A stretch of 64,000 bases of DNA from Bigelowiella natans CCMP2755 (lineage: Eukaryota; Protista; Cercozoa): positions 56,541-120,540 of the forward strand of contig ADNK01001071.1 of NCBI GenBank assembly GCA_000320545.1, read 5' to 3'. Below are positions 34,815 through 41,228 of this stretch, piece after piece (the stretch's first letter is position 1; each line of letters starts with the position of its first letter). The notes beneath the pieces are model-generated. The model was given only the letters and a program-made list of their open reading frames with translations, was not told the origin of the DNA and did no database searches. A program made the position numbers and the translations under genes.

Positions 34815-35043
34815 CTACTTGTCCATCGATGGCTTATTCGATGCTGTCGCCTTTATCATCTCTGAGGGATCCCCCCCGAGTCTTTCAATCATCTCTTGAA
34901 CAAACTTAAAGCCAGGGGCCTGCGACAAGATTACAATGATAAGTACATTCGGTGAAAAGTACGATTAGGCAACTGCTTTCTCGGCAAAAAATAATGACTG
35001 AAAATTCTCTTCTCTACCGCCTACTTCGATGGCTGAAATATGC

Positions 35044-35085
<42 letters not shown>

Positions 35086-35563
35086 TATATAATATATATA
35101 TATATATATATATGTTATTTATTATACACTCGTTTACTGCATTTAATATATGCAGCAGCACCTTCCTAGCTGCAGGATTTTTGGAGCAAGAGCTTATAAA
35201 CTTCTCGACCTCCATTTTCAGCGCCCACTCCTCTCTGGATCTACGGGGAGGGGATATTGGAACCCAAAAAAACCGAAGAATATGACAATGATGAAGGAGA
35301 GGAGTAAAATCGAGGAGGACGCATTGATTCGTTTATTAGGTCGGTGTAACATCCTCGCGGCCTACTACAGAAAGCTGAGAAAAACAGTGTTTGATGACGT
35401 ACAAGGCGGGTCCTGAGAACTCTCGGTCGAGAAGATATCCGCTCACGGTCGACGTCTCCAGGCTCACACGATCGAGGAATATCTCGAGAAGTCTGGCTGC
35501 CTGTGTTGTTGTAGTTTTTTGTGATAGTAGCAGTATATAATACATATATATTGAGATATAAAA

Positions 35564-35639
<76 letters not shown>

Positions 35640-35819
35640 GAAACGAGAAGGAAAGACGGCGTACAGGTTTATCAAAGTCATTATCGTTATTAGAGTCTTC
35701 GCCTCCTAGTTTTGCTTGCTAACACAACGCACACCACTTTCCTTCGCTGCTGCCACTGCTACTGCTGCTTCATCGGTGCTGCCACCGTCAATACCTCCTT
35801 GATTTTCATCTGTTCTGGA

Positions 35820-35852
<33 letters not shown>

Positions 35853-36209
35853 ACTTCTTTCACCGCGTCCATAACGATCATATTCAGGTCTGGCCACAGG
35901 TCCTGGAAGTGGTTACGATGTAGTTGTTGTTGAAAATACGTTGTAAGAACAGCTGCTATCAAGCATCATTAGACGGAGACGAGTGTTGGTCCCTGCAATG
36001 GAGGTGTTCTCCTCTAATTCCTTTCTTCCCTAATCGCGTTGTTGTTGTTGTTTTAATCGTTGTTGCTTTTATCGATGTTGCTCTCACCTCCAGGAAAGGG
36101 CGATCCGTGAGGCTCAAAACCGTTCCGAAGCGTCTCGGTTGAGACTCAGCACCCTCCTCGCTGTCCCAGCACATCTCGCTTTCAACGCCACTGCAGTCCT
36201 GATAAAACA

Positions 36210-36245
<36 letters not shown>

Positions 36246-37501
36246 TATGGGAGATGGGAATCGTAACGTAGTAGTACCAAGAAGAGTCAGCGCTGTACTC
36301 ATCATGTTGTCGAAAAGGGGTAGGGAGGAGGAGGGAATGGGGATGCATTTTTGTCAAACAAAAAAGGCAAATGAATGGTCTCTTTTGCTTTGGACGCATT
36401 GACAGCTACCAGGTGGGGAGGGTTGAAAGCAGTTCTCATTGTAGTCGCAACTTTGTGGAAGTTCTCGTCCTATTAAATCAGGCATATATCAGCGGCGTTA
36501 AACGGAATTTGCATCATGATGATGATGGTGATGATGACGTTGGTGGAAATGCCAGTGCTACTTAACCACCTGCAGCGAAAAGCCAACAAATAGCATGTGC
36601 TTTGTGATGAGTAAAGCTTGCACGATGCTGATGGTGACGTTGATAATAACGATGATGGGGAAAATTAATCACAACTCGATTTTGTGCTACGATCGAAACG
36701 TAGCAATGACAATAATAAAGTGTGTCTCGCCATCAGAATTACGAGCATTAATGAATCTTCATCAAATATCACTGTCTTCCTCGTTTTCTCATCTTCTTCC
36801 TCCTCCTGCTCCTTGGCATCATCGTAATCGTCATCATCCTCATCCTCCTCCTATCACGCAGCGCCACTACCACCCACCCACCCACCCAGATAGAGCCTTT
36901 CGTCTATCGTCGTATCGGTCGACTTGTTCCCGTGTCAAGACAATATCCTGAGGACAAGAGATAGATATCAGCATGTTACTGCAGCGCGCTGCCGTCATTA
37001 TTTCTCTGCCGACTGTCTTTTGCTGGAATAAATGTGGCGAGCGTCATCATCATCCTTTGCCCTCGCGCATGGCATGCATGGCATATGCCCTCTTCCCTCT
37101 CCCCGCACTATTTCTGGTACAATTTCTCACCTCAGGATGATTTACATCGCCATGAAGCTTGAGAATCCATTTGGAATTGGGTGTGCGGACTTCGTAGGGC
37201 AGCGCGTATATAGGTTGCTGAGAGGGGGGGGATAGAGAGAAGTGAAAAGAACAACACGGCACACATCGAAGTAATACTCCACACAAATCGTATCTGCACC
37301 CCGCCTACAGCGGAAGAAGAACATGTCTCGCTCATCCTGCCCCCCGCCCTGCATTATTACCTGTGAGGCCCTGCAGGCGTCCTCAAACATGGTGTCGTAG
37401 TTTGTGGTCACGATGGCATCAACAGGGATGTTCGACAAGAGACTGCGGTCAAAACGTAATCAACAACAATAACAACTAGCCTATAAATACCACAATATTT
37501 G

Positions 37502-37577
<76 letters not shown>

Positions 37578-37726
37578 ACCCATCGCACAACCCCACCTAT
37601 GCATCATCGAATGTCTCGACGTAGTGAGCAAATGTGCTATCTCACGCTGCATCCACGTGCATCGTTCACCCGTCGGAGTAACAGGCAAGTTCCAGCTATT
37701 GATGTGGTTGCCTTCCATCCCACATT

Positions 37727-37759
<33 letters not shown>

Positions 37760-37770
37760 GGTGCGGGAGA

Positions 37771-38109: not shown

Positions 38110-38144
<35 letters not shown>

Positions 38145-38621
38145 AACGATATTATTCGTGCTATTCATTATAATGGTTTTGAACGAGCAGTATGTACCAC
38201 AAAAGCATAGTAAGGTGTATTGAGTCATTCAAACCACACGCGTCCTATTCACAATTGTAGCTGCTCAAGCCAACAAACAAATCCCTTTGATGATACAAAC
38301 CTGATCTAGGAATGACAGTGTTGTCAGCTGTCGCATATCTTCGTTCGATAGCCCGCTGGATCTTTGATGGTCACAACATTCACCGAAACACTATCATCAG
38401 CATCAGTGAGTCAAGTCATTGGACCGAGAAAGAGGAGAGAAGTGGGGAGAGGGAGATGGGGATGGCAATTGGGTGGAATGACTTTGCAAGAATTTGGAGG
38501 AGTTCCTTCCAATCAGGAAGGCCGCCAGAGGAACTGCGCATTTGAGGAGGAGGGGGGAGAGGGGGGGAAACAAGGAGGGGGAGGAGGAGAAATGAATCAC
38601 CAAAAGCAGATGGAGGGGAAA

Positions 38622-38668
<47 letters not shown>

Positions 38669-38962
38669 CCGGGAGGGGGGTCTAACTGCATGCCCCGTAC
38701 TTCGGTAAAGTGATAATACAGTATCGAAGGAGTGGCAGTGGTGAAGGGGAGGGGGAGGTGGAGGAAGGTGGTCCTCCTACGAGTGAATATGACGACATCA
38801 CCACCTGCATCCGGCCCCAATGAAGAATACGATCTCCCCCGCAATCGCCATCTCCGCCAGCTTCCTTGACGCCTTCACTAGACGAGGAGGTAGCGGACTC
38901 CACTAACGACAACGACAACAACAACGACAACAACAACGACAACAACACCGCAGCTATATATA

Positions 38963-39029
<67 letters not shown>

Positions 39030-39605
39030 GACAACAACGACGAATTCGATGTTCTGTCAGCTTTACGTCTTCAAGCATGGAAAAGGCGTGGTAGTAGTAA
39101 TAATCATCATGTTACCTCGCTATTGAACCTGCGGCTTTCTATCTGTAGCCTCGTTGCTTGAGCCGCTGTAGCACGGAGAGAGCGGTGGCAATGGCGAAGA
39201 CAGCGCGATGAGCAATAGCGGCGCGAAGAGTTTCACACGACGACGACGGCGACGAAACGCGTTTTTCACATCTAGCAGCGACGGTGTATGATGAGTACTA
39301 CCACTAAACATCTGGGGAGAACGAACCACAAGCACGATGTCCACGCCCGTTCTGGCTGCGAAGACGTACCTGCGGTGGTGATCGAAAGAGCAATTATGGA
39401 CATCGAGAATGAAAGGAGCAACAAGGTTCATAGCAACTCCGCCCATTATGCTACATTTATGTTACATTGTCGCTCCCCTTCTTATCTTGTCGTCGTGGGA
39501 GGAGACGAATAAGGGGAAAGGGCTACGACTACGAGCTTACAATCGTTTGAGCAAGGCGGAGAGCAGCTGCCCAGAGTTGTCCCGCGCATTACCTTCACCT
39601 AGGGA

Positions 39606-39650
<45 letters not shown>

Positions 39651-40292
39651 ATGGAGTTATCCCCTTATATTTTGGTAGAAGATGATGAGTCAGGTTGCTA
39701 CCTGTCCCAATAACTGGTAGAGCAAGTAAGTGCCTCGAGCGATCATTTTTTGGAGGGATTCCACGTCCTTGCCCCTCCCCTTCTTCGCCAGAACTCCCAC
39801 CGCTGGTAAGGTCCTGCACTGCAACCTAGAGGAAGCAAACTATTGATAAGAGCAGCTAAAGGAATGTAACAATAACAACAACAACAACAACGACGACGAC
39901 GACGACGACGACGAAGACTACGACGACGACGACACAGCAAGAATAGTATACACGACAAAGAAGCGGCAAAATAATGAAATAGCCTTATTACGTGAAGATA
40001 CTGCCAGGCGCAATTGAGGTACCAGCTAACAGGCCGGAAGTTATCTCCCTAGGATGGAAATACCGACGTGATGAGATACAAAGGACCAAATACAAAGCAA
40101 CAAAAAGAAGAAGGGGGACATGATGAAAAGAGAGAAATTGAGAATTGACTGCTCCTAAATGGAGGAGCCGTGAAGTTACTACCTTCGCAACGTAGCCAAG
40201 CCACAGCCTTGGATGATTCTCAGTAGGACCAATTCCATGCACGCGATGCACTCTGCATAGTGAGCAGCGACATCACAGGGTATCTAGCACAT

Positions 40293-40340
<48 letters not shown>

Positions 40341-40553
40341 TGTGTGTGTGTGTGTGTGTGTGTGACTACCTCCTCTCTTCTGTGAAAGCTGACTCTGGAA
40401 TCTCCACCGCGCCTTGTGGTGGTCCCTTTATGCATTTGTAAGGGATGTAAAACAGACAACAACAACAACAACAACAACAACAACTTATGAATACTCCTGG
40501 GCTCTCTCTAATGGCTGCTGCTTGGAGCGACCTACTACTACGATCACCCTAAC

Positions 40554-40590
<37 letters not shown>

Positions 40591-41228
40591 GTATATTTTT
40601 ATGTACGTACATCTGGGAACCAGTCGGTATTTGTAAACTTTCGGGTAGGGTACAACACTGCATCCGCTGCGACTGTACGGAGGTCTCCCTGCACAACAAA
40701 GACATGCCCTGGGGATGACACCCCATGTTTCTTTCCGAGGTCAGATGTGCTCTGGTGCTCATGGATACGACGGCTGACGCCTTGTTGTTTTCTGCTTCCT
40801 CCAGCTGCTGAGGCAGTTGACTCAACTGGATCATCCTTGAAACACTGAACACTCGAACATCGTCGCTTTTGTCGTTCCACAGTGCTTGGAAGATTCTGGC
40901 CTCTGAGTTTATAAAGAAGCGTGAGATGCGAGTTATTGATAGCCTTTACAGTTACCGTTCGCGGTAAGATCTTCTCAGAGGTGTGCGCAAGGCTCGATTT
41001 GCCAGAGTATGAGCCCATTTATTCGCCAACCGCGAAGAAGAAATTCGATTACTTCGAGCAACATATTCTGTGATGGAATTTAGAAAGTTTAGTGTAAACA
41101 GTTGAGTCAAAAGACAAACGCTACAAACCTGGATGGCGACTGGGGTATACCAGGGAGAACGGGACATTATTGAGATAGATTAGGAAGGCGAGGCTCAGGA
41201 ACACGCACCAACGTCGTCGAGCCAGCAT
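34815..41228 (-). CDS. Macro-domain + SIR2-like (SIR2_2 family) NAD-hydrolase fusion protein with N-terminal signal/transit-like leader; ~20+ exons
   Basis: Spliced motifs in order: MLARRRWCVFLSLAFLIYL (ATG 41228); GHVFVVQGDLRTVAADAVLYP (40611-40902); RHLLALPVIGTG|EG (39702-39825); VDIVLVVRSPQMFSAA; EIVFFIGAGCS|SSGGLPDWKELL (38805-38902, ~38485-38535); LSFLDQ|AKVIEQ; HSMMHS|LLSNIPVDAIVTTNYDTMFEDA (37361-37442); WILKLHGDVNHPE (37131-37217); DIVLTREQVDRY; IVQALLITKHMLFVGFSLQ|DENF; RFGTVLSL; AARLLEIFLD; ...EMIERLGG...SMDK-TAG at 34815. A few small internal exons are uncertain. Confidence 0.88.
35567..35636. repeat. Compound intronic microsatellite (TA)n(TG)n
   Basis: Direct reading. It is representative of many similar tracts, e.g. 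22700-22754, 38967-39028 and 40297-40363. Confidence 0.95.
37505..37575. repeat. Compound intronic microsatellite (AC)n(AG)n
   Basis: Direct reading; lies within an intron of the Macro-SIR2 gene. Confidence 0.95.

Follow-up and report, generated by a model that had tools for sequence, protein, structure and literature searches.

The 64,000-nucleotide (nt) stretch of Bigelowiella natans CCMP2755 DNA analysed here (contig ADNK01001071.1, positions 56,541 to 120,540; hereafter the window) carries on its minus strand, from 41228 to 34815, an expressed nuclear gene whose product joins a Macro domain to a SIR2 domain. In order, this product consists of a signal-like leader of ~135 residues, a divergent macroH2A-like Macro domain, a zinc-less SIR2_2 domain and a conserved helical tail. 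On balance, the protein is probably a ligand-gated NAD+ glycohydrolase (NADase) of Macro-SIR2 architecture, a reading that we favour with some reserve.

An earlier note, made from the letters of the window, had claimed some 20 or more small exons, and 25 were found, each of 50-292 nt, separated by 24 introns of 53-331 nt that are all GT-AG. The coding pieces are short open segments of changing frame, all on the minus strand, and together form a coding sequence of 2,220 nt (739 codons) with its sole stop, TAG, at 34817-34815, followed by a 3' untranslated region that extends to at least ~34750. The region is eukaryotic in character, with a GC content of ~41-48%.

RNA was mapped on positions 34880-40879 of the window (6,000 letters), using Logan contig sets from three studies (X1, X2 and X4) and a raw RNA run (X21). 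Spliced contigs from the three studies back 22 of the 24 introns. Fourteen of these, concordant among the three runs, are seen directly as plus-strand CT..AC joints (GT..AG when read on the minus strand), and the raw reads of X21 show two of these joints as well; eight more are fixed by contig-length bookkeeping plus one loose end (35502 matching 35798 onward); exons in skipped-repeat stretches were placed from the record lengths between mapped contig pieces. The 56-nt exon at 40425-40370 is needed for the frame, and the RNA contig has 57 unassigned nt exactly there; the reading GTTTRRGGDS, in another frame near the same place, was rejected as non-coding. The two introns of the leader, at 41128-41068 (61 nt) and 40955-40903 (53 nt), come solely from the public model of the gene and from in-frame joining to a signal-peptide-like exon 1. 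If these two short introns are real, the gene starts at ATG 41228; a start at ATG 41018 with an unspliced first exon is disfavoured by the public model and by the in-frame signal-like exon from ATG 41228. Under this condition, the gene begins upstream of the extent first assigned to it, 34815-40902.

The exon-3 open frame, searched against a library of 1.84 billion proteins, led to two proteins that are used throughout. P0001 (jgi/Bigna1/72819, 781 amino acids), the public model of the gene, shares 93% identity along the part that aligns. P0002 is an ortholog of 681 amino acids (~60% identical) with both domains in one open reading frame (ORF) on a single 4,088-nt contig, and tblastn with it agrees exon by exon with the RNA-based model. 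Several errors were found in P0001: 39301-39116 is read through or mis-framed, 38482-38043 is mis-framed, exon 15 (37711-37597) is skipped, and ~38 residues are inserted from 36029-35916; the protein is mis-predicted at its residues ~313-470 and around 640-670. The 739-codon model, supported by RNA contigs and P0002, corrects it. Because P0001 is partly mis-predicted, the SIR2 part was studied on P0002 as a stand-in, and the window's own Macro domain on P0001:128-312.

A Macro-side contig (exons 3-8) and a SIR2-side contig (exons 9-22) are linked by a separate spliced contig over the exon 8/9 junction. The Macro and SIR2 exons, for which separate transcripts had been named as an outcome to check, are therefore joined through exon 9 by a chain of contigs, not shown on one molecule. 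The motifs on which the gene had been recognized all fall in in-frame exons of the minus strand (hyphens at exon breaks): VVQGDL..ADAVLYPT in exon 3, LALPVIGT-G-EG in exons 7/8, FFIGAGC-S-SSGGLPDW in exons 11/12, VTTNYD in exon 16, LKLHGD in exon 17, DIVLT in exon 18 and LFVGFSLQ-DENF in exons 19/20. The exons, with the evidence for each, are as follows.

Exon 1, 41129..41228, minus strand: start at ATG 41228 if the leader introns are real (MLARRRW...), hydrophobic core at residues 8-22; start of public model P0001, frame and hydropathy.
Exon 2, 40956..41067, minus strand: Ser/Arg-rich leader; in-frame GT-AG introns of 61 and 53 nt, match to P0001.
Exon 3, 40611..40902, minus strand: end of leader and start of Macro domain (GHVFVVQGDL..ADAVLYPT); RNA piece 40610-40879 continuing upstream, tblastn with P0002, match to P0001.
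Exon 4, 40370..40425, minus strand: Macro domain, 56 nt; frame need and 57 unassigned contig nt, in P0001, similar in P0002.
Exon 5, 40183..40252, minus strand: Macro domain (VHRVHGIGP); joint 40047/8 to 40182/3, tblastn.
Exon 6, 39992..40048, minus strand: Macro domain; RNA joints on both sides.
Exon 7, 39702..39825, minus strand: Macro domain (LLALPVIGT); contig piece 39700-39823, joint, tblastn.
Exon 8, 39541..39598, minus strand: diphosphate loop of the Macro domain (G-EGNA); joint 39366/9 to 39538/41, tblastn.
Exon 9, 39302..39369, minus strand: last Macro strand (VDIVLVV), linking Macro- and SIR2-side contigs; joints on both sides.
Exon 10, 39116..39165, minus strand: linker (AAQATR); joint 39165 to 39302, AAQxxR conserved in the family.
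Exon 11, 38805..38902, minus strand: start of the SIR2 Rossmann fold (VFFIGAGC); contig piece 38805-38898, joint, tblastn.
Exon 12, 38483..38533, minus strand: SIR2 (GGLPDW); RNA joints on both sides.
Exon 13, 38301..38361, minus strand: SIR2 helical insert; joint 38361 to 38483, contig-length bookkeeping, tblastn.
Exon 14, 38043..38100, minus strand: SIR2 helical insert; contig-length bookkeeping and frame, similar in P0002.
Exon 15, 37597..37711, minus strand: SIR2 helical insert; contig piece 37597-37710, skipped in P0001.
Exon 16, 37361..37442, minus strand: catalytic Asn (VTTNYD); joints, Pfam SIR2_2 positions 2-22 (E 0.003), DSR2 N133 via P0002.
Exon 17, 37131..37217, minus strand: catalytic His (LKLHGD); joints, Pfam SIR2_2 positions 34-61, DSR2 H171 via P0002.
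Exon 18, 36886..36947, minus strand: SIR2 (DIVLTREQ); joints, tblastn with 88% identity.
Exon 19, 36570..36627, minus strand: SIR2 (LFVGFSLQ); joints, tblastn with 100% identity, PADLOC ThsA positions 177-197.
Exon 20, 36410..36469, minus strand: SIR2 (DENFHKV); joint, contig bookkeeping, tblastn.
Exon 21, 36088..36198, minus strand: variable loop and conserved G-T-L strand; contig piece 36087-36197.
Exon 22, 35795..35902, minus strand: conserved LW motif and 11-Ser (GAT)n repeat; joint 35901 to 36087, loose end 35502 = 35798 onward.
Exon 23, 35403..35500, minus strand: C-terminal helical region (ARLLEIFLDRV); contig piece 35403-35502, joint, X21 raw reads.
Exon 24, 35162..35240, minus strand: C-terminal helices; joints on both sides, in contigs and X21 raw reads.
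Exon 25, 34815..34919, minus strand: coding end with TAG 34817-34815; joint 34918 to 35161, contig running ~170 nt past the joint, frame.

The SIR2 part of the protein belongs with the anti-phage NADases. Pfam SIR2_2 (PF13289) matches P0001 with 95.6 bits and P0002 with 95.1 bits against a cut-off of 24.5, and a profile of 95 family members, compared with all PDB sequences, finds SeThsA (6.5e-37) and BcThsA (1.5e-33), then DSR2, KomC and SIR2-HerA, with FAM118B at 1e-7 and classical sirtuins only at E > 0.008. The AlphaFold2 model of P0002:123-681 (pLDDT 93, pTM 0.93) has BcThsA, KomC and DSR2 as its top fold matches, and it contains the conserved helical tail of ~100 residues after the SIR2 core. 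With the catalytic pairs of ThsA (N112/H152) and DSR2 (N133/H171) as reference, DSR2 N133 corresponds to the Asn of TTNYD and DSR2 H171 to the His of KLHGD (pairwise, via P0002), and T, N, D, K, H and G of the two motifs are invariant in 68 homologues; the Asn, the His, the GAG loop and the D/P/G positions of the Macro domain are invariant or nearly so across 68-95 homologues. No Cys occurs among the invariant or near-invariant columns of the family alignments, and the four-cysteine zinc tetrad of classical sirtuins is absent. These data bear out two proposals of the earlier note: that a Macro domain and, after it, a zinc-less SIR2_2 domain like those of anti-phage NADases (best matches ThsA, DSR2 and KomC) lie on a single polypeptide, and that the catalytic Asn and His are intact.

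It is extremely improbable, by contrast, that the gene encodes a classical zinc-binding sirtuin deacylase, is a pseudogene, or represents two mis-joined genes, and our results refute this. Apart from the mis-predicted stretches that the public model does contain, nothing speaks in its favour, whereas classical sirtuins match at E > 0.008 compared with 1e-37 for ThsA, conserved Cys are lacking, the frame is open over 25 GT-AG exons, the contig chain passes through exon 9, and P0002 has both domains in one ORF.

Matches to models of individual defence systems are more limited. NCBIfam scores are far under the equivalog cut-offs, and the PADLOC ThsA models match via the SIR2 part only (positions ~12-218 of 478). 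When single exons were scanned, Pfam gave weak SIR2_2 matches (TTNYD exon, E 0.003, positions 2-22; KLHGD exon, E 0.024, positions 34-61), PADLOC placed three pieces weakly (2e-4) on ThsA, and no Macro model was matched by either. The proposed likeness to Thoeris is a loose one: the SIR2 domain is nearest to ThsA, and the remainder differs. No SLOG/STALD sensor was found with the PADLOC ThsA models or in the AlphaFold2 model, the C-terminal region being a helical extension instead; no transmembrane effector domain is present, the only hydrophobic stretch being the N-terminal signal-like segment and the remainder SIR2 plus helices; and a TIR/ThsB neighbour is lacking, as described below.

The identity of the N-terminal domain is indicated by a profile match to the macrodomain of Capsaspora macroH2A1.1 (E 3.9e-10) and of human macroH2A1.1 (3e-5), with a GD..(C)DAvv.PT strand-loop and an AFP.IG.G loop among the motifs aligned to macroH2A1.1. 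The domain keeps the adenine-contacting Asp and the Gly-rich diphosphate loop, and D19, P134, G137, G142 and G148 are conserved at a level of at least 90%. The AlphaFold2 model of the window's own Macro domain has a pLDDT of 90.6, and among the Foldseek matches listed almost all are macro domains and the rest designed proteins (probability 1.00, TM 0.5-0.6). It was described that macroH2A-like macro domains bind ADP-ribose (ADPR) without catalysis, and that a Macro domain is the signal sensor in Thoeris (PMC11204291). Since macroH2A-like domains are described as non-catalytic ADPR binders, we infer that the Macro domain here would act as a sensor rather than as a hydrolase.

Taken together, we hypothesize that the Macro domain acts as a non-hydrolysing binder of ADP-ribose or of a conjugate of ADP-ribose, that binding may alter the conformation or the oligomeric state of the protein and thereby open the SIR2 site, and that NAD+ would then be destroyed in the compartment set by the leader. 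The ligand might come from a TIR enzyme, from ADP-ribosylation turnover, or from the enzyme's own product. An immune or stress role would be plausible. B. natans has TIR_2 genes elsewhere, at C2143:1939-2301 and C180:12920-13045, one of which scores 96 bits in a 649-amino-acid uninterrupted open frame; in principle these could be signal producers for a Macro sensor.

The homologue search gave 113 full-length relatives of the Macro-SIR2 protein. About 23 of them, 475-852 amino acids long, form a eukaryotic (algal/protist) set that includes Prymnesium parvum; the remaining ones are ~500 amino acids long and intron-less, and all named ones are bacterial. In a scan of one genome per prokaryotic species, at least 328 bacterial relatives were found, from Actinomycetota, Myxococcota, Planctomycetota, Rokubacteria, Chloroflexota, Acidobacteriota, Thermodesulfobacteriota and others. 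In each of two quick maximum-likelihood trees, the eukaryotic sequences (about 20, algal or protist) group together as a single clade (SH-aLRT 99 and 100), and this clade attaches, in the unrooted trees, at a polytomy with several bacterial groups. As regards the idea that the gene was acquired from bacteria and then gained introns, the full-length intron-less bacterial two-domain homologues and the single eukaryotic clade agree with it, and the pattern is compatible with a single transfer from a bacterium to a eukaryote and a later gain of introns (24 here vs. none in bacteria); the direction of this putative transfer, which the trees do not establish, depends on an unrooted tree.

Two members of the eukaryotic clade, P0024 and P0044 (840 and 852 amino acids), carry a C-terminal EF-hand pair after the Macro-SIR2 core, which hints at a calcium input in some lineages. 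B. natans itself has a second Macro-SIR2 paralogue, found by family-profile search in pieces on four small neighbouring contigs (C649-C652); the open frame on C651 (210-amino-acid ORF, 207-839) carries the LMTKHMVFIGFSLTDYNFHK motif.

Neighbouring genes of the bacterial homologues were surveyed in eight annotated contexts, in 80 loci searched by tblastn within 10 kb, and in 119 nearest-neighbour ORFs of ~70 loci examined with Pfam. In Arthrobacter, Microlunatus and Knoellia, an ADP-ribosylglycohydrolase (ARG), with or without a DSPc domain, and NUDIX-NrtR adjoin the homologue, with or without ARPP-1, and one metagenome contig has ARPP-1, Macro, GmrSD and an SLFN-type helicase near it. Within 10 kb, NrtR occurs in 16 of the 80 loci, ARG in 10 and ARPP-1 in three, and NrtR is directly adjacent in several loci, including those in Myxococcota and proteobacterial metagenome-assembled genomes. 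NrtR_WHD, with seven occurrences, is the sole clearly recurrent family among the 119 ORFs; TY-Chap2 and ADP_ribosyl_GH occur twice each, and the others are scattered singletons, including Mrr_cat and TerB. In Actinomycetota, the Macro-SIR2 gene also lies beside ADP-ribosylglycohydrolase-DSPc and ARPP-1, next to an adnAB-like PDDEXK/UvrD pair. The set of NrtR, ARG, ARPP and TY-chaperone corresponds to an "ARG-centric" conflict system predicted previously (Iyer et al., 2022; PMC9503650).

From this survey, it follows that the bacterial Macro-SIR2 is mostly stand-alone, sometimes part of an ADPR-sensing module, and not a Thoeris effector. Whether the bacterial homologues sit in defence islands, a check that the earlier note had called for, receives a mixed answer: some loci hold GmrSD, the SLFN-type helicase, Mrr or TerB, while the recurrent neighbours are NrtR and ADP-ribosylglycohydrolase and many loci look like housekeeping ones, so that the association with defence is partial.

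These neighbourhoods lend themselves to a different reading, in which the SIR2 domain, instead of destroying NAD+ in bulk, transfers ADP-ribose to protein or nucleic acid, the Macro domain reads or tethers the mark, the bacterial ADP-ribosylglycohydrolase-phosphatase erases it, and NrtR senses the released ADPR, in a writer/reader/eraser arrangement as in SirTM-Macro. The association of ADP_ribosyl_GH(-DSPc), NUDIX-NrtR and ARPP-1 with the homologue in Arthrobacter, Microlunatus and Knoellia, the frequencies of NrtR and ARG within 10 kb, the top rank of NrtR_WHD among neighbour families (7/119), and the occurrence of a macro-fused SirTM (8rsn) among the fold matches of the Macro domain are all consistent with it. 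However, the sequence and fold neighbours of the SIR2 part are the NADases ThsA, DSR2 and KomC, with no SirTM chain among its sequence or fold matches, most bacterial loci and the eukaryotic genes have no ARG partner, and the lack of a coupled sirtuin was the trait by which ARG systems were defined (Iyer et al., 2022; PMC9503650). We therefore regard a transferase as rather unlikely.

Another reading of the same neighbours, and one that also draws on the N-terminus of the eukaryotic proteins, is that the family keeps NAD+ and ADP-ribose in balance as a housekeeping or organellar enzyme and plays no part in immunity or cell death, acting as part of an NrtR regulon in bacteria and after import into plastid, periplastid compartment or mitochondrion in algae. 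The bacterial homologues mostly start within a dozen residues of the Macro domain, a few having up to ~20 extra residues, whereas ~19-20 of the 23 eukaryotic clade members are longer at the N-terminus by 30-135 residues. In B. natans, this extra part comprises a basic stretch, a hydrophobic core and then ~100 Ser/Arg/Thr/Lys-rich residues, and resembles the bipartite leaders of chlorarachniophyte plastid and periplastid proteins. In addition to these leaders, the adjacency of NrtR in several phyla, the non-defence surroundings in Georgenia and several metagenome contigs, and the steady low-level expression of the B. natans gene in the runs of seven studies would suit a homeostatic role. On the other hand, the patchy single-clade spread in eukaryotes and the mixing of phyla in the bacterial tree point to a mobile accessory gene, some loci lie among GmrSD, SLFN-type helicase, Z1, Mrr and TerB, and the nearest characterised SIR2 domains are all abortive-infection effectors. 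A purely homeostatic function thus seems to us a doubtful alternative to the ligand-gated NADase.

A related and more specific proposal is that the algal clade members gained targeting leaders (in B. natans, a signal peptide plus a Ser/Arg-rich stretch) and act in an endosymbiont-derived compartment as ADPR-gated NADases, which we consider quite improbable in this specific form. If true, it would mean organelle-level shutdown or organellar NAD+ control, taken over from a single-gene module that in bacteria is coupled to NrtR, a repressor that senses ADPR.

Returning to the ligand-gated NADase, several points weigh against it. None of the 69 N-domains matched the Pfam macro families (PF01661 and relatives), and PF01661, run in six frames over the genome, found other genes and missed the Macro-SIR2 gene. 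Of the two family models proposed as a check, SIR2_2 thus recognized the protein and Pfam Macro did not, the Macro domain being identified by the macroH2A1.1 profile and by its fold; because 0/69 members match, we place it in a divergent macroH2A-like subfamily outside Pfam coverage. Since no Pfam Macro model recognizes the N-domain, ligand binding is predicted from a few conserved positions only. Further, four of the eight annotated contexts are housekeeping-like, including those of Georgenia and metagenome contigs; a TIR/ThsB neighbour occurs in none of the eight, and the 119 nearest-neighbour ORFs, which matched 60 families, show no TIR family among the 25 commonest of these. Neighbours of the NrtR/ADP-ribosylglycohydrolase kind fit ADP-ribosylation or NAD homeostasis as well as defence. 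The leader is a putative signal whose targeting function is deduced from its sequence features, and no experimental work on any clade C protein (the published group to which this protein belongs, see below) was found in the literature.

Some features of the transcript bear on how the gene is expressed. In 20 runs of the seven studies, the share of sampled words present was 0.09-0.28, which is about as large as the exonic fraction of the stretch. An unspliced RNA contig, 39340-39567 (228 nt), is present in all three contig sets at about one third of the local k-mer depth, so the intron 39370-39540, between the last Macro exons, appears to be often retained, and its retention introduces a stop codon. 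On 34880-35480, first mates of the raw X21 reads fall on the minus strand in a ratio of ~8:1, and the splice ends identify the minus strand as that of the mRNA; from this bias the library appears to be forward-stranded, and the 13 reads mapped from 6% of the run indicate low expression in X21. A non-canonical joint, 36813/39235 (TG..TC, 2,421 nt skipped), occurs in X2 and X4 at depths of 225 and 94 with 21 nt on one side; both of its ends lie in triplet-repeat-rich DNA, and it is probably another transcript or a repeat artefact. Most (nearly all) introns contain at least one microsatellite, of the type (AT)n, (GT)n, (GA)n or (GAT)n, with repeats at 35035-35125, 35542-35644, 36205-36245, 37500-37575, 37735-37810, 38100-38145, 38620-38665, 38950-39030, 39605-39650, 40285-40365 and 40555-40590, and the (GAT)n run inside exon 22 is in frame and encodes 11 Ser.

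The B. natans protein and its clade are already published, and the finding is not novel. A survey of EukProt defined five eukaryotic SIRim clades, of which clade C, from 83 eukaryotic species, is typically a SIRim-Macro fusion and is placed with bacterial proteins of the ThsA-like kind; in the supplementary table of that survey, EP00466_Bigelowiella_natans_P021490 is assigned to Clade C, and its N-terminus is that of P0001 (Bonhomme et al., bioRxiv 10.1101/2024.09.18.613514). The gene described here encodes this same protein, with nothing different in kind. Macro-tagged SIR2_2 members also appear in a tree legend of the FAM118 paper (NSMB, PMC12700824), and no paper was found on a Macro-SIR2 Thoeris effector or on B. 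natans SIR2. The discovery value is therefore low, the family and the protein having been catalogued. However, the published survey used the partly wrong public model and was without bacterial neighbourhoods or N-terminal leaders, and the value of the present analysis lies in a corrected, RNA-supported gene model, in bacterial kin that are stand-alone or tied to NrtR/ARG and not to TIR, and in targeting-like leaders specific to eukaryotes. Research on the eukaryotic kin of anti-phage NADases of bacteria considers them possible immune modules of ancient origin; the B. natans gene offers a clean expressed example of such kin, and relatives of B. natans can be manipulated in the laboratory.

Among characterised systems, type I Thoeris ThsA (SIR2-SLOG; BcThsA 6LHX/8BTO, SeThsA 7UXT) is the best sequence, profile and fold match of the SIR2 domain and shares the catalytic Asn/His and the lack of a zinc module, but its sensor is a C-terminal SLOG rather than an N-terminal Macro domain, and the bacterial homologues sampled here have no adjacent TIR (ThsB). 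Type II Thoeris ThsA (TM-Macro) also has a Macro domain, which binds an ADPR-type ligand and is joined to a killing module (PMC11204291); its effector, however, is a membrane domain instead of SIR2, the Macro domain here is nearest to the macroH2A type, and no TIR partner was found. DSR2, DSR1 and KomC have the SIR2_2 fold and the catalytic pair, and the bacterial Macro-SIR2 gene is, like theirs, often alone, but those proteins, all of which lack a Macro domain, sense phage proteins or dITP via other domains or partners. In SirTM-Macro pairs and Mfs1 (8RSN), a sirtuin-superfamily domain is also coupled to Macro, and the Macro domain of 8RSN is a fold match; by contrast, the SIR2 domain here is of the SIR2_2/SIRim type and not of class M, while SirTM ADP-ribosylates proteins and its Macro partner is a hydrolase. 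Finally, the human proteins FAM118B and FAM118A (SIRal/SIRanc) represent SIR2_2 in a eukaryote as well and have anti-phage sirtuins as relatives (profile E 1e-7; PMC12700824), but they form a separate clade A without Macro and are far more distant from it than ThsA.

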